Source: Trichoplax adhaerens (taxonomy: Eukaryota; Animalia; Placozoa). Taken from it: 64,000 nt of DNA. The DNA lies in NCBI RefSeq assembly GCF_000150275.1, contig NW_002060943.1, positions 3,616,008 through 3,680,007 on the forward strand. The letters run 5' to 3'. Both the position numbers and the translations under genes were made by a program. A model generated the notes under the pieces. That model saw only the letters and a program-made list of their open reading frames with translations, ran no database searches and was not told the DNA's origin. Position 1 is the stretch's first letter. Every line of letters begins with the position of its first letter. Of this stretch, positions 3,221 to 11,562 are shown piece by piece.

Positions 3221-6200
3221 ATGAAAACGATATATTTGTTATTGTACTTCATTTTCATCTTGTTTACAACTGATCCAACCAAATGTGCTGGTCGTATTTG
3301 GCGTTGGCATCAGGATCGCCTTAACCTTTATAAAATAGGTCATCATGGACCTACCTATTCACATCTCGTCGTTCAATCTCGACAGAATCAATCCTCCGGC
3401 TACGCTACATCTGAATCCTATTCTGCAACAACCAATCTTGCTACTTCGCAGGTTAAAGTTCATAATTTTGTCGACGATTTTCATTCTTCCTTTTTTGCTC
3501 AGAATTTAAGTATTTATGGCCGATTGATAGTTGTTAACAATCCGTTAAGAACTATTTCTGTACTTGAACCCCACAGCCCCGGCGGTTGTAATATGTCTAT
3601 TATGTCGACAGTAGCAGACACTGCTCAAAGAGCTCATTGCCATGTAGCCATGAATGCTGGATTTTATAATGCGGAAAGTGGAACATGCTACGGTAATATT
3701 ATTTCCAATGGCAGACGGGTTAAAATAGCCAATGTTCAAAACGTGAATTTTGGTATCCGCAAGAATGGATCGATTATTGTTGGTTATTTAACGGAAGAAG
3801 AAATTCTTGATGATGAAAATCCATTTGTTCAGTTAGTCTCAGGTAAGCGTAAAACATGAAAACCAGGCTTTTACCTTAGATAAATAGATATGATGCCGTC
3901 ATGGACTTGTTTACGTAATAAACCAGTGATTTTAATAAATATTTAGAAATCATAGTAAACATTATATAGCGTTAGCTCATATTGATTATAATGATCACTG
4001 CTGCTTGGCAGTCTACAAATAAAATATTGTCGTCGACAGTAAGCAATTAACTTAGTAACTAAGCTTCTACTTTCTAATATAATTGCCATGCCATGAACTT
4101 GTTTACAGAATAAATAAGTGATTTGATGAATATTTACAAATGATCGTCAGCATTCTATAGTAAATTTTCGTGTTGAGTATACTGTAGATTAGCTAGCACG
4201 CTCCCTAACAGTCTATGGAGTAAAATAGCATAGTCCAATGCGTAGTTTACTTGGCTCAGATGGAATCGGTTGTATACTGTACCTTACGAGGTATAAAATG
4301 TGAAGTCGAGGGCGTTACATATTACTATCGTGCATCAACTACGAGCATCGTGTCGTATGGTCGTACTTTACGAAGCCGGTAATCGATTTCATAGTGACCT
4401 ACTATTGTTAGTCTTAATTAATATTAAGTTAATAGTTTAGTATTATAAATATATATGTCCCATTTGAAACTCTTATTCCACATTAAGAGTAAAATTGTTG
4501 CTTATTCATGCACGACTCAGCATGTACCAGTGGTATACTTAGATATAAATGATGTAATATTTACGGTAATAAACATACGAGTATATGTTTTTAGGTGTAA
4601 TATGGCTAGTCAGAAATGGAAAATTGTACATTAAAGAGAGCATAGAAATGGAAAGTAGTCAGCGGGACGATCTTGGAATACTCAAACAGTTTGTTGAAGC
4701 CAGATCAGCTAGGAATGCCATTGGCCATGACAGAGATGGAAATGTTATGTTGATGCAAATAGAAGGCCAAACAAATCTTAATGGGTAAACTTAATGTTCA
4801 AATATTATCATAGTGCATGACAGTATAGCATAATTTTTAATACAATAGTCAAAATACATTGCAATACATTTTAAATTATTGTTATAAAATATTGAAAAGT
4901 AAAAATCACGCTTATATACTATTTCAGTTACTCCTTAAACTAATTATTTCTTTCATTCTATCTCCTCTGCATCCGTCATTAAGAGTTGATATTTATATAG
5001 ACATGTAACGACCTTTTGTTAGATTTACAATTTTAAAATAACACTACTCAATTATTTCTCGAACGGAAATGAGATCTAGACTGTGTGCATTTATAGCAAT
5101 GAATGTATATACGAGAAACTGTAAATTTAGTTTTTAATAAGACATCTAATTATATGATGTATTCTACGTACCCCAGATTAAATCTATACGACTTTGCAAT
5201 GAAATTAATTGAATCAGGATTTGTCAATGCTATTAATTTGGATGGCGGAGGATCATCAACAACTGTCATTGATGGTGTTACGGTTGGCTATCCATCAAAT
5301 CACTGGTAAGTATTATAACCTTCGTAGTAATACTACATCAGTAATATCTTGTAATTTCTTAAATAATAACTTCCATAGCATCTAATTTAACTTATTCCTA
5401 TTCTCAAGCTTACTTTTTATGAATCTGAGATTATGCTGTTTACTGAAAGACTGCAATAATGCGATATCATGTTACTGAAAAAACAATTGAAATTTGCTTC
5501 TAGCTGATATACCTATCTTTTATTTCAGTAGCAAATCTAATACGGCCTTTGGATGTTCTCAAGCAGTGTCTACAGTTATATGCATTCAGGACTTACATTG
5601 TTTGCCTCAAGATTGCAATAACCATGGCAAATGTATAAATGGAAAATGTCTGTGTAACGATCACTGGACCGGCGAAACTTGTGATACTACTATCTGTGAA
5701 TACTTACGTAATTGTTCAGGAAATGGCCAATGCACACAAGGTTTCTTCTAAGGAAAGATTTCTAAACAATGAACGACTATATTTAGTCTTGCGATATTAC
5801 GTTAGTCGTTAAATTTTTTCGGACATATTTCCTTGCATTCTCAAAAATTCAAAAATTAATAAGACTACGAGAAATTAAATAGCAGAATTCATACCGTACA
5901 ACAGGATTTGTTACCGATTCTATTAGCTGTATATTATCATTTGATGGAAATTAGTTAACAATATCTACGGTTAGAAATGAAATAACAGAAGTTATACAAT
6001 AGTTATTGATACTCTCTATTGGAACTTTGGAAGTAACAATAAGTGGTTACCATTGATCGAAAAAAGTGTATAGAATTACTATGAGAAAAATAATTAAATT
6101 TACATAATACTATTTGACCACTACAACTATCACACTAATTGATTGAGCCTAAACTGGAGATCAGTCTACTAATTTACTGTTAATGCGAAAAAATCTATAA

Positions 6201-9200
6201 TGAAGACTTGCTGTAGTTATGCTTCTAAAAATTTTTTATGATTTTGATTCGTCATATTTAGATGGTTGTAACTGTAATCCGGGATGGGTTGGGTTGTTTT
6301 GTGAGCTAGGTATGTATCGTACACTGAATTATCACATCTTCTTTGAAATGTATATAGTATTTTGTATTATGATTGAAAAATCTCTTGGAAGAGACAATGC
6401 TTCTAATAGTATTTTATGTTAGTATATTAGAATGAAGATAGGTCACAAAATGACAATTTATATAGAAGAACTCTTGTTAGATAAGCTAACCCTGAATTTA
6501 CTGATCATAAATTTTACCTATCATCTGCTTACGTCTTTACATAGATAACAGCATGTATTTTATATAATAGTATGAAGTAAAAAGGGACTGATATTCACCA
6601 AGTTTGATATAAATAGATCGTAGCTTGATCTAATAAAAATTAGAATTTCACAATTTAGCTTAGAGAGGAAGTTGAGCTACGGTAACTTTCTGACAATATA
6701 CAATCAGTCCATTGAATATTATATGACATACTGTAGATAACAGCATATTTTTATACCATGTTATCTTATAAAGATGAATTAATCTTTACCTTGCTATACA
6801 TTAAAATTGTGGCTAAATTTAAAGTTAGATTTCCACGGTTTTGCCTAGAGAGAGACTTGGAATTAATTTAACCTCCTGATAATAGGAGATAGTCCATCTT
6901 TTGAGAACGACAGTATTACATACAAATACCGGATAGAACAAAATTTTACAGTTGACTCTATATTCTGCCATTACTCTAGCTTTTTGATCTATAAATGAGT
7001 GATAGAATAGACAGTAGCAAATTGAGAATGATTCTAATATGTTGTTTAGCTCATCCTCGCACGGATTTTGGTCAGAGATGCAATCGGGTATGTAATTGTG
7101 AAAATGGAGCAAAATTGGATCTGGTAACCGGAGATTGCCCCTGCTTACAAGATTGGACGGAAAGTTTTTGTGATAGAGGTAAACTTTTAGCTAGTATTTA
7201 GCACAAGCTCTACAATATCTAGAATTGCATTTCGTATCATTAGAAATAGTGCTTATGCGCTTCTGTTCTGTGATACACTCCATTTTGCATTTAGAATGTC
7301 CGCTGGGCTTCTATGGTAAACTTTGCATCGACAAGTGCAATTGTGATTCCCCTTGCATGTGTAATCTTGTAACTGGGAAATGTGAAAAAGAAAGTGAACG
7401 GTGTAATCGCCTAAATAAATCCCGTGGCTATGTTGAGTTTGAATCTACACCGACTGCAACGAATCTCGCCAGCCCACAAATTAAAGTCCATGAGTTTATG
7501 GACGATTTTTATTCTTCCTTTTTTTCTGAAAGTTTAGTGGTTTACGGTCGACTCATCGTAATCGAGGATCCGTTAAGAACTGTTTCCGTCCTTGAGCCAA
7601 ATGGGCCTGGCGGCTGCAATATATCTACTATGGCGACGGTAGTAGATACCTCTCGAAGAGCTGGGTGCTATTTAGCAATGAATGCTGGTTATTTTAATGC
7701 AGAAACCAGAGGATGCCTCGGTAATATTATCTCCAACGGTAGACTGGTTCGAATAACGAGTGTTAAGAACGTCAATTTTGGTATTCGTAAAAATGGATCA
7801 ATTATTGTTGGTTATTTAACCGAGGATGATATTCTCGATAGCAGAAATCCATTTATTCAGTTAATTTCAGGTAAGGATTACCCTAAGTGTTGAAATCAGA
7901 TATTCTGCTAGATGTAATAGGAATTTAAGCCCCTGAATTCATCGATATATTAAAGCAGTGATTTTTATACATATTTACAACTGTCTTGAAAGTTACGTGA
8001 GGATTCGTTGTTTTGAGTATAGTATTAACTACTACGATGTCTGACAATCTAGAATATCAGGGTATAATAGTCTAAGTAAAAGTAAAAATTCTCTCAATTT
8101 TATTAATTATTGAGGAATTTATCTAGATAATAAATTTTAGTAATTTTATAATTTTCCGGAAACGGCCAAAAATATTTTTGAGCATCATTTGCGCTGAGAA
8201 TCGCCTTAAGTGCTGTCGAAGAATCTGTGGAATCAAAGTAGTACGGTGGAGGCATTAAGCTTAGCTTAATTATTATGGCAAGAAATTGGTATAGAAAATA
8301 TATTTGGGTAGCATATATATTAAATCAGTGATATTTTAAAAACCTGCTACATTATTTACCCGAAATATAGCGTTACCAGCTGCTTGACAAATTTATAACA
8401 GCAAAATATTACAGTAAAAGTAATAAGCTCAGCTCCTGTTGCCTTTAAATTCGCTCAAGAACGTTACAAAGCAATGTTAACCATAATATTTACTACTATC
8501 TAACAATCTATAGCTCCAAAATATTGTAACCAAACAACTAAACTTGGCTCAGATCCTTAGCTGTACACTATATTATATTACACAAAGTTATTGATAATAA
8601 AACTAGTGAAATAGCTAATTTACCATCCTATCGTTACTATCCTTTGCAATTACCTTACACTTTAGGTCCTGCATGATCTACTAACATTAAGCTGATAAAG
8701 TAATGCTTCCAGTATACTTTTTAAAACCTGGAAAATAGTTAATACCTCGTATCATCTAAAGATGCGCCTGTTTAATGCAATTGATACGGTTCATATCGAC
8801 TGCTAATGCAGTAATATCTGCTATTATTCATGAAGCAGTACCGTACAGTCTACGGAATATTAATTTAAGATAGATAATTATAATTTATTCATGCAGGTGT
8901 TATATGGTTAGTAAGAAATGGAAAATCATATGTCAAAGAAAGCATGGAAATGGAAAGCATAAAACGAAAGGATATTAGATTATTAAAGTGGTTCGTTGAA
9001 ACTAAATCAGCCAGAAATGCCATTGGCCATGACAGAGATGGAAATGTTATGCTGGTACAAACAGAAGGCCAGACAAACTTTGAGGGGTAAGTTAAAGGTT
9101 CCAAATACCCCGGTATTAGGAAGTACACAACTGATAGTATGTATTAGTCCGATTTTGGAATATACTGCAATGCCAGTATATCTTGAAATATTCTAGAGTA

Positions 9201-11208
9201 TTTAAAAGTAAATAATGCTGTAAACAATCCTAATTTGATCAGTGCTTTAACACCTGCATCTTACAATTCTATCAATATTCTACAACTTAGGATAGCAGCT
9301 TTGCATATAATGAAAATGTTGTAATTCTGTCGTAGTTTTATTTAATACGGTACGAACTTAAATTTACGCCACCCAATAATTTTTCTTGAACTCCAACAAG
9401 ATCTGGACTGTTTGCAGAGATATCAATAAACATATATGCAATACTAATAAGAATATTCAATTTCATAAGAATAATAATATTCGATTTAATAAGAGAATCT
9501 ATTAATTGATTATTGACTCTATAAATCTCAGATTAAACTTATATGACTTTGCCGAGAAACTAATCGAATCTGGATTTGTCAATGCTATCAATTTGGACGG
9601 GGGAGGATCATTAACAACAGTTGTCAAAGGTGTTACCATTGGCTTCCCATCTGATCCATGGTAAGATTTATATAACATTTGCTGTAATGTTAGAACCCTA
9701 ACAATTTGAGATTTCCGAAAGTCGCATGAGTCTTGGACATGTTATAATTATCTTCTATCGTCCATATTTGACGATGATAAATATTATATCAATATACTGT
9801 CATTCTTAGTATTTAAAGTCTTGCTATAAGGTTATCCTATATTATTATAGAATGCTGATAAATGTTAAGATATTCTTGGAGCTAATGTAGTAATATTTCT
9901 AATTGTAAACGATATCAACAGTGAATCAAATATAGCCTATCGATGTGCTCGACCAGTATCTACAGTTATATGTGCTCATCGCTTGCATTGCATACCTCAA
10001 GATTGCAATAACCACGGTAGATGTTTACATGGAAAATGTCTTTGCAACCATAACTGGACTGGTGAAGCTTGTGAAATTACTATTTGTGGATACTTACACA
10101 ACTGTTCAGGAAATGGTCTATGTACCCCAGGTTCATTTTTGAAGAAATACTTACCTACATAATTTTGTCATGAGTAGAAATGGTCAAATTTAATTCTTCA
10201 ATAAAGTTTCTCGGGTGCAATAAAGACATATTGCTACGAAAATTTGCAAATTTTAAATTTTCTCCTTAACATTTAGATGGTTGTAGTTGTAACCCGGGAT
10301 GGATTGGATTATATTGTCAGAAAGGTATTTATCGTGTAACTAATTCTTGTATTTTGCTCTATAAAAGGGATATAGTATACCCTAATGACAATTAAATCTC
10401 CAATGAAACATGTACTTTCAACTATTAATATATATTTTGTATCGGTATTCCATTTAGAATGCGTTTGCTGATAGAATTTAATAAATTAAGAATCATGTTA
10501 ATATTGTCTAGCTTGTCCTGCAACAACTTTTGGCCAGAGATGCAATCAGACGTGTATATGTCAAAATGGAGCTCAATGTGATCCTATAACTGGCAACTGT
10601 TCCTGCTTACAGGGTTGGACAGGCAGATATTGTGATAGAGGTAAAGTTCTTATTGATTCATTAGTACAAATGATACAAAATCATGATTGCATTCCTTGTA
10701 ATTAAAAGCACCGTCATTGCCACACAAAAAAGCTAATGATGCTGAAATCCGTCTTATTCTGTTACCCCATTTCTCTTCTGCATTTAGAGTGTCCATTTGG
10801 CTTATATGGTAAGCTTTGTGTCCACAAGTGTACCTGTGATTTACTTTGTATGTGTAATCCAATAACTGGAGAATGTGAAAGCCAAAGTCGCCGTTGTCAC
10901 TATCATAAAATTCAATGTCAGATGAAATCAAAGATTCTAAAATACAGGTATTAAGAATAAAGAAGTATTAGCATTATTATCATATTGGGATAGAGCTTGG
11001 CCATTATGTCTAATTTAGTTGGAAATTTCCATTTAATCGATAATTTTATACTGCATCAATCATTTCTACATTTACCTGACTTTGAAATACTTATTATAAA
11101 TATATTCGTATTCTGAATAGATTAAGAAAACTAGATTTCTTTGGATATCTTGCTGCTTTTATTGTGAGTATCTTTTCATCGCTGTATATATTCCTACTCG
11201 TTCAATGA
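3221..11208 (+). CDS. NAGPA: NAGPA-like N-acetylglucosamine-1-phosphodiester alpha-N-acetylglucosaminidase (uncovering enzyme) with two tandem catalytic+EGF modules, signal peptide and C-terminal hydrophobic anchor
   Basis: Exons 3221-3842, 4595-4784, 5177-5305, 5529-5740, 6262-6309, 7050-7178, 7295-7870, 8897-9086, 9532-9660, 9922-10130, 10277-10324, 10512-10640, 10788-10947, 11121-11208; all GT-AG and phase-compatible. Motifs occur twice: P-LRT(I/V)SVLEP, NAG(FY/YF), GNIISNG, NVNFGIRKNGSIIVGYL, SGVIWLVRNG, SARNAIGHD, NAINLDGGGS, VSTVIC, each followed by EGF/laminin-EGF repeats. The 3' end is less certain (see findings). Confidence 0.88.
3890..4230 (+). repeat. Degenerate ~190-bp tandem duplication in NAGPA intron 1
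   Basis: atgccgtcatggacttgtttacgtaataaaccagtgatttt (about 3892) versus atgccatgaacttgtttacagaataaataagtgatttg (about 4088). A related segment lies in the paralogous intron 7871-8896. Confidence 0.6.
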
Positions 11209-11269
11209 CAATTGGGAGGAAAGAGTTTACTACGCGTTAGGAATAAGCAAACCAAAAAACGATGATGAT

Positions 11270-11562
11270 GATAAATCAATTATAACTGCTTAAGGATCAC
11301 ATTCCGATGGCGTAGATGATGACGGAAAGGCTTTTAGAAAGCAGTCGTAAAACTAAACAAGCTAGCAACGAAGGTGTGAATACTCGTAAATCAATTATAG
11401 CTGCTTCAGGATCGCATTCTGATGGAGTGATGATGGAAAGGCTTTTAGAAAGCAGTCGTAGGATTGAACAAACTAGCAACGAAGATTAGGATAAATCAAT
11501 TATAATTGCTTAAGAACTGCATTCAGATAACATAGATGGTGACGGAATGACTTTTAGAAAGT
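11270..11562 (+). repeat. ~105-115-bp tandem repeat, about 2.7 copies, just downstream of the NAGPA stop
   Basis: Unit (ga)taaatcaattata..tgctt.aggatc.cattc.gat.....gatga.ggaaaggcttttagaaagcagtcgta starts at about 11270, 11387 and 11490. Confidence 0.85.

Follow-up and report, generated by a model that had tools for sequence, protein, structure and literature searches.

A single gene of the placozoan Trichoplax adhaerens contains two NAGPA catalytic cores, each followed by its own EGF-like stalk, an arrangement that arose by internal doubling and that confirms the observation made in a preliminary description of this DNA. NAGPA, the lysosomal uncovering enzyme, performs the final step in making the mannose-6-phosphate tag. 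The gene occupies positions 3221-11208 on the plus strand of the window (i.e., the whole 64,000-nucleotide stretch of DNA that was analysed) and comprises 14 exons, all introns being of the GT-AG type, whose joined frame of 2859 nt, or 952 codons, has a terminal stop only. It was shown that this single 952-codon frame represents one gene and one spliced mRNA, the transcript being pieced together from contigs rather than read from a single molecule spanning exons 1 to 14. Taken as a whole, the explanation presented here, namely one gene of duplication origin that encodes a diverged membrane-anchored enzyme with two working heads, is considered quite probable.

Exon structure and the chimeric exon

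The first and second modules are designated M1 and M2, respectively, while S denotes a canonical single-module paralogue located on the minus strand of the same scaffold at 10.072-10.076 Mb, 6.4 Mb away. Residues are given in human numbering where stated. The features of the locus are as follows:

Exon 1, 3221..3842, plus strand: start codon, hydrophobic signal peptide (~first 23 codons), propeptide-like segment (codons ~24-51), beginning of the M1 core
Exon 2, 4595..4784, plus strand: middle of the M1 core; human-numbered residues 226-228 are D-L-G
Exon 3, 5177..5305, plus strand: end of the M1 core; DGGGS at 5241-5255
Exon 4, 5529..5740, plus strand: last part of the M1 catalytic domain, EGF1/2; Arg316-equivalent codon at 5560-5562
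Exon 5, 6262..6309, plus strand: end of M1 EGF2; RNA joints 5740>6262 and 6309>7050
Exon 6, 7050..7178, plus strand: M1 EGF3; two of eight cysteines gone, all kept in M2 and S
Exon 7 (chimeric), 7295..7870, plus strand: M1 EGF4 (7295-7413) in frame with the start of the M2 core (7414-7870)
Exon 8, 8897..9086, plus strand: middle of the M2 core; residues 226-228 are D-I-R
Exon 9, 9532..9660, plus strand: end of the M2 core; DGGGS at 9596-9610
Exon 10, 9922..10130, plus strand: last part of the M2 catalytic domain (Arg316-equivalent codon CGA, 9950-9952), EGF1/2
Exon 11, 10277..10324, plus strand: end of M2 EGF2
Exon 12, 10512..10640, plus strand: M2 EGF3; Cys/Tyr polymorphism at 10542
Exon 13, 10788..10947, plus strand: M2 EGF4 and juxtamembrane segment
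Exon 14, 11121..11208, plus strand: TM helix (11137-11202), one further residue, stop (11206-11208)
3' UTR tandem repeat, 11272..11561, plus strand: 111 nt x 2.6; coding in the H2 gene model

The predicted chain consists, in order, of a signal peptide, a propeptide-like segment, the M1 core, four EGF-like repeats, the M2 core, four further EGF-like repeats and a TM helix. Pfam family PF09992 was matched in both modules, with 103.9 bits in M1 and 102.7 bits in M2 (cut-off 25), the matches extending in each from position 2 or 3 to position 167 or 168 of the 169-position profile, and EGF_Teneurin/EGF_2 matches are likewise present in both. In the searches the window exons were taken singly, while the protein RDD40425.1 (P0164) of Trichoplax sp. 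H2, together with parts thereof, served as the full-length reference. The hydrophobic 22-residue segment at 11137-11202, a homologue of the S membrane helix, argues against simple secretion; a secreted digestive role had been put forward in the preliminary description, next to bivalent glycan handling, as a conceivable function. The stop codon one residue past this helix leaves the two-headed protein devoid of a cytosolic tail.

Exon 7 is read in a single frame, with its first 37-39 residues resembling the last M2 EGF exon (10790-10906; 62% amino acid identity) and its residues from ~40 onward resembling exon 1 from residue ~55 (155 aa; 65% amino acid and 73% nucleotide identity), in agreement with the preliminary description, according to which the exon opens as a copy of the last EGF exon and continues as a copy of exon 1. 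When placed against paralogue S, the junction falls between CTA (7411-7413) and AAT (7414-7416), near the position of about 7405 proposed for the switch, and, as had also been stated, there is no stop, intron or second signal peptide at the junction within exon 7295-7870. Beyond this point the exon sizes (190, 129, 212/209, 48 and 129 nt) and the intron phases (1, 2, 2, 1, 1 and 1) repeat between the modules, so that the reported recurrence of six intron positions and phases is upheld, one exon differing slightly in length (212 versus 209 nt). The further claim that the introns are still faintly homologous holds for three of the six paralogous pairs (i1/i7, z 5.1; i2/i8, z 6.2; i6/i12, z 4.1), whose colinear residual similarity exceeds that of 100 shuffles and of all 30 non-matching intron pairs, but not for the other three, which do not rise above these controls.

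As to the origin of this structure, a placozoan NAGPA gene may first have been duplicated into the conservative copy S and a faster-evolving copy, in which illegitimate or unequal recombination would then have brought the last EGF exon and exon 1 together, with the result that ~4 kb of the genome, including the introns, was doubled. The putative breakpoint in exon 1 is situated ~five residues beyond the vertebrate propeptide-shedding site, and the frame would have stayed open because the intron phases match.

The junction also bears on the possibility that the product is a polyprotein, cut between the modules at R-C-N-R to yield a soluble distal enzyme and a membrane-bound proximal one. This minimal R-x-x-R motif (residues 479-482) is located precisely at the junction, and the NAGPA propeptide is a known furin substrate; however, R-x-x-R also occurs in S beside the membrane anchor, and within EGF3, while the P3 residue of the motif is the last EGF cysteine, which is probably disulfide-bonded, rendering such processing very unlikely.

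Transcription through the junction and comparison of gene models

The RNA evidence consists of assembled contigs from three runs of two studies (X19, X20 and X18) over the stretch 5450-11300, with exons 1-3 located outside it. All ten splice junctions within this stretch are present in contigs of each of the three runs, including 7178>7295 (side 130) and 7870>8897, which link exon 7 to its neighbours, exons 6 and 8, and transcription thus proceeds through the junction. Single contigs contain exons 4-6 together with the whole of exon 7, and in record 15 of X19 (1161 nt), M1 exons 2-6 are followed by the entire exon 7. Structure and transcription are therefore in agreement with the proposal of one gene formed by an in-frame, exon-to-exon intragenic tandem duplication. 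Contigs of exon 7 stop at 7872, the branch point of the spliced and intron-retaining paths, and the first ~690 nt of intron 7 are covered at one quarter to one half of exon depth, so that some of the transcripts may remain unspliced or terminate prematurely. Two odd joints, 9618>5528, which goes back, and 9077>9531, with 8 letters between, were rejected as signs of trans- or back-splicing and considered artefacts, since they arise from M1 exons 2-3 being aligned onto their M2 paralogues, the 8 letters being the M1-specific end of exon 2.

It could be argued that the single gene is a misreading of two distinct genes in tandem, or of an assembly artefact, given that merged tandem NAGPA arrays occur in a fish assembly, that a Lingula model contains a 100% identical internal repeat, and that an in-frame ATG located in intron 6, at 7255, might conceivably initiate a product consisting of M2 alone. 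This is exceedingly improbable in view of the uninterrupted junction, the splicing of exons 6, 7 and 8 in three runs with no contig listed across intron 6 in any of them, and the presence of at least half of the sampled words of the gene, and up to 0.99 of them, in runs from five studies. Furthermore, the independent H2 assembly shows an equal structure, and the modules, at 73-79% DNA identity, are too unlike for a repeat collapse.

The public annotation of the sister strain, Trichoplax sp. H2, already includes the two-module protein (RDD40425.1, 995 aa), and the architecture is consequently not new to the databases. The H2 protein is colinear with the 14-exon model up to and including exon 13, the exon 1 product being 99% identical to its residues 1-208. 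The RDD40425.1 model differs, however, in an extra splice at 11166 into the 111-nt repeat, through which the TM helix is lost; this splice is absent from the RNA contigs of the three runs, in which 11119-11300 is unspliced, and the repeat most likely lies outside the protein. In the T. adhaerens reference model of the same locus (XP_002107782.1, TRIADDRAFT_13425; 337 aa, partial; JGI), M1 exon 3 jumps to M2 exon 10, which hides the duplication and leaves one module, and this model is corrected here. Literature searches with the accessions and with Trichoplax plus mannose-6-phosphate returned nothing on the two-module gene.

Selection and the active sites of the two heads

Paralogue S, whose orthologue in H2 is P0166 (582 aa), shares its exon boundaries with the two-headed gene at 66-86% identity per exon, and the tree has the form (S,(M1,M2)) with support 100/97. 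Branch lengths are 0.058 for S, 0.18 for the stem, 0.28 for M1 and 0.32 for M2, and the modules evolve at 8-10 times the rate of S. Between M1 and M2, dS is 0.86 and dN 0.20, with branch omega values of 0.19 for M1, 0.25 for M2 and 0.11 for S plus stem, and values of 0.17 versus 0.23 for the catalytic domains of M1 and M2. Both modules are under purifying selection (omega about 0.2), which bears out the earlier suggestion that their divergence with frames kept open reflects selection. As dS is about 0.9-1.3 across all pairs, and near or at saturation, the duplication is not datable against the split from other placozoans, and an exon-1 tree with the placozoan-like fragments P0286, P0287 and P0002 leaves the order unsettled (support 62/23, AU p 0.21).

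A fusion tolerated without gain, with one head or the stalks drifting and the gene degenerating, would be compatible with the elevated rates, with the loss of two cysteines from M1 EGF3, and with the absence of any orthologue of the junction from the results of a word search that used the chimeric exon. In addition, the coding differences listed among strains comprise 12 non-synonymous and 6 synonymous changes, and Cys>Tyr changes occur in EGF repeats at 7343 and 10542, which suggests that the stalks have lately been only weakly constrained. Such an evolutionary leftover is nevertheless quite unlikely, as an open frame of ~850 codons has persisted across a dS of ~0.4-0.47 per branch, the omega of each head and each stalk being about 0.2, and as correctly spliced transcripts of the gene are present in three runs.

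It has previously been reported that canonical NAGPA forms a parallel non-covalent dimer on EGF stalks, that the vertebrate propeptide occludes the catalytic groove until furin cuts it off, and that, within the active site, Asp286 is catalytic, Arg316 binds phosphate and Thr227 contacts GlcNAc (PMC13474241). These positions were surveyed, in human numbering, in 120 listed homologues. The DGGGS loop with the catalytic Asp286 is present in all 120 and Thr260 in 117 of them, and both are retained by M1, M2 and S. Position 227, which is Thr in 115 of the 120 listed homologues and in S, is Leu in M1 and Ile in M2; residues 226-228 read D-L-G in M1, D-I-R in M2 and E-T-G in S, so that neither head retains the Glu226-Thr227 pair that contacts the N-acetyl group of GlcNAc, and M2 lacks Gly228 as well as Thr227. 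Arg316 (119 of the 120 listed) is kept in M2 and S, as is Arg313, which is replaced by Gly in M1. The furin-site arginines, found at P4 in 118 and at P1 in 116 of the 120 listed homologues, are Leu and Gln in M1, where the propeptide-like segment H-G-P-x-x-S-H is kept while the R-x-x-R motif is gone; M2 has no propeptide. The description of two complete catalytic modules consequently stands at the domain level, where the Pfam family is matched twice, but not at the level of individual residues, since neither head has Thr227, the M1 furin motif is gone and the reference M1 is without Arg316.

The M1 Arg316-equivalent codon is CAA (Gln) in the reference, with Gln likewise in the H2 protein, and CGA (Arg) in the RNA contigs of X19 and X18, the difference being at 5561. 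RNA editing is an unlikely cause, as the same contigs hold many differences other than A>G. One A_deamin gene (ADAT1 or ADAR) is present in the genome.

These residues raise the possibility of an asymmetric single-chain pair, in which only M2 would be catalytic and M1 would act as a locked, zymogen-like or glycan-binding partner in place of the homodimer. M1 indeed holds a potentially groove-blocking segment from which both furin arginines are gone, and has Gln at Arg316 and Gly at Arg313 in the reference and in H2, with M2 having both arginines and no propeptide; ordinary NAGPA is a dimer, and the missing cysteines of M1 EGF3 could loosen the stalk. However, the Arg read at the M1 position in X19 and X18 RNA means that M1 does not carry a fixed defect there, the M1 core is at least as constrained as that of M2 (omega 0.17 versus 0.23), and Thr227 and Gly228 are gone from M2 too. 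Moreover, there is no linker past EGF4, so that the heads could meet only if the semi-rigid stalk bent back on itself, and the ESM Atlas model of the H2 protein (pTM 0.38) is not confident as to global arrangement. Such a pair is regarded as unlikely. It is unlikely, too, that the chain is a tail-less replacement of the NAGPA dimer working outside the trans-Golgi, e.g., at the placozoan's digestive surface or within its secretory granules, with M1, unable to shed its propeptide and with Arg or Gln varying between strains or transcripts, as a regulatory or glycan-holding partner to a propeptide-less, constitutively open catalytic M2.

The preferred reading is that both heads are probably working NAGPA-fold units, as suggested by purifying selection and by the DGGGS loop and Thr260 in each. 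The absence of a tail, the Leu and Ile in place of Thr227 and the distal propeptide-like segment without a furin site suggest altered sorting and possibly a changed preference for substrates; judging from sequence, the two-headed protein is most likely a diverged membrane-anchored GlcNAc-phosphodiester glycosidase of the lumen or cell surface. Since canonical NAGPA is a parallel dimer, the simplest geometry would be a two-storey molecule, in which M1 might pair with M1' and M2 with M2' of a second chain. S, with a TM helix followed by a ~40-residue cytosolic tail bearing an acidic cluster and with all canonical residues kept, is likely the trans-Golgi uncovering enzyme, and GNPTAB-like and CI-MPR-like genes exist in this genome.

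By itself, the two-headed gene does not open a long-standing question. It represents a clean, datable exon-to-exon intragenic duplication in an early-branching animal, expressed and under selection, with one head possessing and one lacking a propeptide, and its co-occurrence with a canonical paralogue in one genome offers a ready comparison for the roles of propeptide, stalk and dimerisation.

Comparison with known single- and two-headed enzymes

Each of the 120 homologues listed in the size range of 547-800 aa has one module, and no diverged, expressed NAGPA of any other animal was found to have the two-module layout, consistent with the view that a two-NAGPA-domain architecture is unusual. 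The word search with the chimeric exon (candidates of 105-334 aa) found no fragment from another organism spanning the EGF-to-core junction and no orthologue with the junction in another placozoan genus; it returned S-like exon-1 fragments only, which is weak evidence given the uncertain coverage of other placozoans in the database.

Two cores per predicted protein, as in Trichoplax, are also found in models of the fish Symphorus nematophorus (KAM9367048.1 and others), but there the repeats are at least 96% identical, begin mid-domain, lack a signal peptide and occur in many copies on several chromosomes. Similarly, Lingula XP_013412616.1 is predicted to have two cores, but its 168-aa repeat is 100% identical and doubles just the first third of the core. 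These models were rejected as proof of a common layout, as they look like young arrays or model or assembly artefacts.

Vertebrate NAGPA (human, 515 aa; 6PKU and 6U11) and the Trichoplax chain have in common the PF09992 core, DGGGS, Thr260, a cysteine-rich EGF-like stalk and a type I anchor, M1 being 45% identical to 6U11 over ~360 residues (E 1e-103). In contrast to the vertebrate enzyme, the Trichoplax chain has two core-plus-stalk modules, is without a cytosolic tail and hence without YHPL/NPFKD-type sorting signals, and lacks the furin motif, Thr227 in either head and the Cys51-Cys221 disulfide. S differs from the two-headed gene in having one module, E-T-G, Arg313, Arg316 and a tail, and in evolving 8-10 times more slowly.

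Somatic angiotensin-converting enzyme (ACE), sucrase-isomaltase and lactase-phlorizin hydrolase likewise have tandem, diverged catalytic domains in one membrane-anchored chain that arose by intragenic duplication. An internal promoter of ACE yields a one-domain isoform; an internal start giving a one-module isoform was not seen in the RNA contigs of the Trichoplax gene. In fold and chemistry, the Trichoplax protein is unrelated to these three enzymes.

Structure and fusion junction of the two-headed gene

The window corresponds to positions 3,616,008-3,680,007 of a 13,260,704-bp scaffold (C1414; assembly 105.6 Mb, 1414 contigs) and has a GC content of 30-37%. The exon borders of the two-headed NAGPA gene were set by reading frame and GT-AG, and the resulting 14-exon model has canonical splice sites throughout and a joined frame of 2859 nt whose sole stop is the terminal one. 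This bears out the proposal of the preliminary description that two NAGPA-plus-EGF modules, here designated M1 (distal) and M2 (membrane-proximal), are fused in one chimeric exon.

Exons of the two-headed gene (window coordinates; borders by frame and GT-AG)
3221-3842, plus strand, exon 1
4595-4784, plus strand, exon 2
5177-5305, plus strand, exon 3
5529-5740, plus strand, exon 4
6262-6309, plus strand, exon 5
7050-7178, plus strand, exon 6
7295-7870, plus strand, exon 7, chimeric
8897-9086, plus strand, exon 8
9532-9660, plus strand, exon 9
9922-10130, plus strand, exon 10
10277-10324, plus strand, exon 11
10512-10640, plus strand, exon 12
10788-10947, plus strand, exon 13
11121-11208, plus strand, exon 14

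Pfam detects pieces of the NAGPA catalytic domain (PF09992) both in exons 1-3 and in exons 7-9, and teneurin-type EGF in exon 4 as well as exon 10. Gapless pairwise alignments of M1 and M2 exons give 60-81% protein and 71-79% DNA identity. The sizes and phases of exons 2-6 recur in exons 8-12, as had been claimed, save for one exon of 212 versus 209 nt. Residues 1-37 of exon 7 align with the final EGF exon of M2 and those from ~40 onward with exon 1 from residue ~55; comparison with a third copy, the single-module paralogue S, locates the junction after codon 7411-7413 and before codon 7414-7416, where a switch at about 7405 had been estimated. The faint intron homology also noted earlier was recovered in three of the six paralogous pairs, in which colinear similarity (z 4-6) exceeds that of all non-matching intron pairs. 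Since paralogous introns are still colinear, the duplication copied genomic DNA, not cDNA. These data show that the two-headed gene was made by intragenic genomic duplication with an exon-to-exon join, and the earlier structural interpretation is supported.

Transcription and existing annotations

A single search returned 20 runs from seven studies that contain a stretch of the two-headed gene, and window positions 5450-11300, i.e., the gene downstream of exons 1-3, were compared with the contigs of four of these. Run X17 presented no splice joints and behaves as DNA. In X19 and X20, a metatranscriptome of 'organism B', and in X18, from 'organism A', every model junction within the compared stretch is present at the predicted base. 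The joints on either side of the chimeric exon, 7178>7295 (shorter side 130 letters) and 7870>8897, occur in all three runs, and record 15 of X19 (1161 nt) comprises the last part of M1 exon 2, exons 3, 4, 5 and 6 and the entire exon 7, so that the RNA check suggested across 7178/7295-7870 came out in favour of the fusion. Record 14 of X18 (1839 nt) begins in exon 8, with listed pieces over exons 9 and 10; further joints of equal contig depth (36.1) carry on through exon 14. These joints rest on contigs, which do not prove single full-length molecules. Exon-7 contigs end at 7872 in all three runs, where spliced and intron-retaining paths diverge, and both continuation contigs begin 30 letters upstream; the ends would represent unitig behaviour at word length 31. 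Among the RNA contigs of these runs across 5450-11300, none was listed for intron 6, and none of the joints seen skips a module.

The first ~600-690 nt of intron 7 (7871-8555) are covered by RNA contigs of X19, X20 and X18 at one quarter to one half of exon depth; these contigs end by 8466-8555, and depth is zero at 8586-8781 in X19 and X20. This coverage could reflect intron retention or an alternative 3' end, in which case the frame would stop at 7891-7893.

RDD40425.1 (P0164; Trichoplax sp. H2, 995 aa) aligns colinearly with the model as far as exon 13, most exons being 99-100% identical; the annotation of the sister strain thus already contains the two-module product, simply named NAGPA. 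At the 3' end, the H2 model differs by a splice at 11166 that leads into a 111-nt tandem repeat and costs it the membrane helix; RNA contigs of three runs are unspliced from 11119 to 11300, and thus the stop at 11206-11208 is kept. The repeat itself (2.6 copies, 78% matches; 11272-11561) lies in the 3' UTR and is translated as the C-terminus in the H2 model. The T. adhaerens reference model XP_002107782.1 (TRIADDRAFT_13425; 337 aa, partial) spans window 3509-10612 and joins M1 exons 1-3 in frame to M2 exons 10-12, thereby hiding the duplication; no joint for this exon skip was seen among the RNA contigs of 5450-11300. No paper naming either accession was found in the literature collection searched. 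The two-headed form is a new variant in a known family; one public annotation already includes it without comment, and the reference model misrepresents it.

Rarity, family history and selection

An exhaustive HMMER scan with the chimeric exon as query returned 426 relatives; of the 150 best representatives, just two have the first core segment twice. The presumed rarity of two-domain NAGPA was upheld, models from Lingula and Symphorus being the only other two-copy cases among these 150. The Lingula anatina protein XP_013412616.1 (P0003) was rejected as comparable, as its 168-aa internal repeat is 100% identical, which suggests an artefact of assembly or gene modelling. The Symphorus nematophorus models (P0160, P0161, P0162, P0001) were likewise set aside, with repeats at least 96% identical and truncated NAGPA-plus-EGF units without signal peptide; this two-unit model family is spread over several chromosomes, and the one model examined, P0161, opens with a stretch rich in lysine and arginine that is unrelated. 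The full H2 protein, used as query in a word search, gave 172 homologues within a length range of 547-1741 aa; the best 120 listed measure 547-800 aa at 37-55% query coverage, i.e., one module. None of the nearest ESM Atlas clusters has more than one module.

Related loci in the genome
G000:C1414:10072236-10076480 (10.072-10.076 Mb; L009, L007), minus strand, S, the third NAGPA unit of the genome
G000:C1414:3115739-3116251, Stealth/GNPTAB-like gene (Stealth_CR2), 0.5 Mb upstream on the same scaffold
G000:C1396:106082-111855 and 130350-136778, two neighbouring clusters of CI-MPR repeats, which suggest two tandem receptor genes

S has the same exon boundaries as M1 and M2, a single module and intact active-site residues; its H2 orthologue (P0166) measures 582 aa. 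With the GNPTAB-like gene and the CI-MPR repeat clusters, the pathway to which the uncovering enzyme belongs is represented in this genome. A maximum-likelihood tree with 13 outgroups recovers (S,(M1,M2)) with support 100/97 and branch lengths of 0.058 (S), 0.18 (stem), 0.28 (M1) and 0.32 (M2). Between M1 and M2, dS is 0.86, dN 0.20 and omega 0.23 (Nei-Gojobori, summed exon by exon); with S as third taxon, branch omega is 0.19 for M1, 0.25 for M2 and 0.11 for S plus stem, and for the catalytic parts alone 0.17 (M1) and 0.23 (M2). The branch values indicate that both halves are under purifying selection of similar strength, weaker than that on S, in agreement with the selection suggested in the preliminary description. 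The two-headed gene is shown to be real, expressed and under selection; its product is a type I membrane protein in which the NAGPA-plus-stalk module occurs twice.

Other samples yielded three placozoan-like exon-1 fragments, which resemble S or have diverged further and do not settle the timing of the NAGPA duplications. Sample SRR30660616 (L012, L013) contains, besides an orthologue of the S type (84% aa identity in the core), a second NAGPA gene (P0002) on short contigs, which has diverged much further and has an altered 226-228 loop; another placozoan-like organism thus also has two NAGPA genes.

Active site, propeptide and membrane end compared with human NAGPA

Cryo-EM published in 2026 shows human NAGPA as a non-covalent dimer carried by semi-rigid EGF stalks, which contacts its ligand through Glu226, Thr227, Thr260, the DGGGS loop and Arg316 (PMC13474241). 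DGGGS is invariant in a set of 120 full-length homologues and kept in M1, M2 and S, as is Thr260 in these three units. Position 227 is Thr in 115 of the 120 and in S, but M1 has Leu there and M2 has Ile, and Gly 228 is replaced by Arg in M2. Arg 316 is present in 119 of the 120, M2 and S, and is Gln in M1 of the reference. The M1 codon (5560-5562) is CAA in the reference, the H2 protein has Gln, and the only X20 contig there, an intron-retaining one, reads A at 5561; in X19 and X18, the spliced RNA contigs have CGA (Arg). A-to-I recoding at 5561 was judged unlikely, because the same contigs bear many differences of other kinds, which makes a strain allele the likely cause; the 'missing Arg' is no fixed trait of M1. 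All three Trichoplax units are without the Cys51-Cys221 pair, and two cysteines are lost from EGF3 of M1. Two Cys>Tyr changes segregate among runs, at 7343 (module 1 EGF4; X19) and 10542 (module 2 EGF3; X18, also the H2 protein), and the listed coding differences between runs comprise 12 non-synonymous and 6 synonymous.

The inhibitory propeptide of human NAGPA (residues 25-49) is cut off by furin (PMC13474241). The furin P4 and P1 Arg, found in 118 and 116 of the 120 homologues, respectively, are Leu and Gln in M1, which keeps a propeptide-like motif ahead of them, and His and Arg in S. M2 has no propeptide whatsoever, and the two heads would differ in propeptide status. The duplication breakpoint lies ~5 residues past the cleavage position. 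S probably represents the canonical uncovering enzyme and its two-headed paralogue a diverged enzyme, with a putatively changed sugar contact at position 227.

The C-terminus of S consists of a membrane helix followed by a ~40-residue tail with an acidic cluster, and the two-headed protein stops one residue past the homologous helix. Without a tail, the protein is probably sorted differently: the cytosolic tail of human NAGPA, which bears sorting motifs (PMC13474241), is absent from the two-headed Trichoplax protein.
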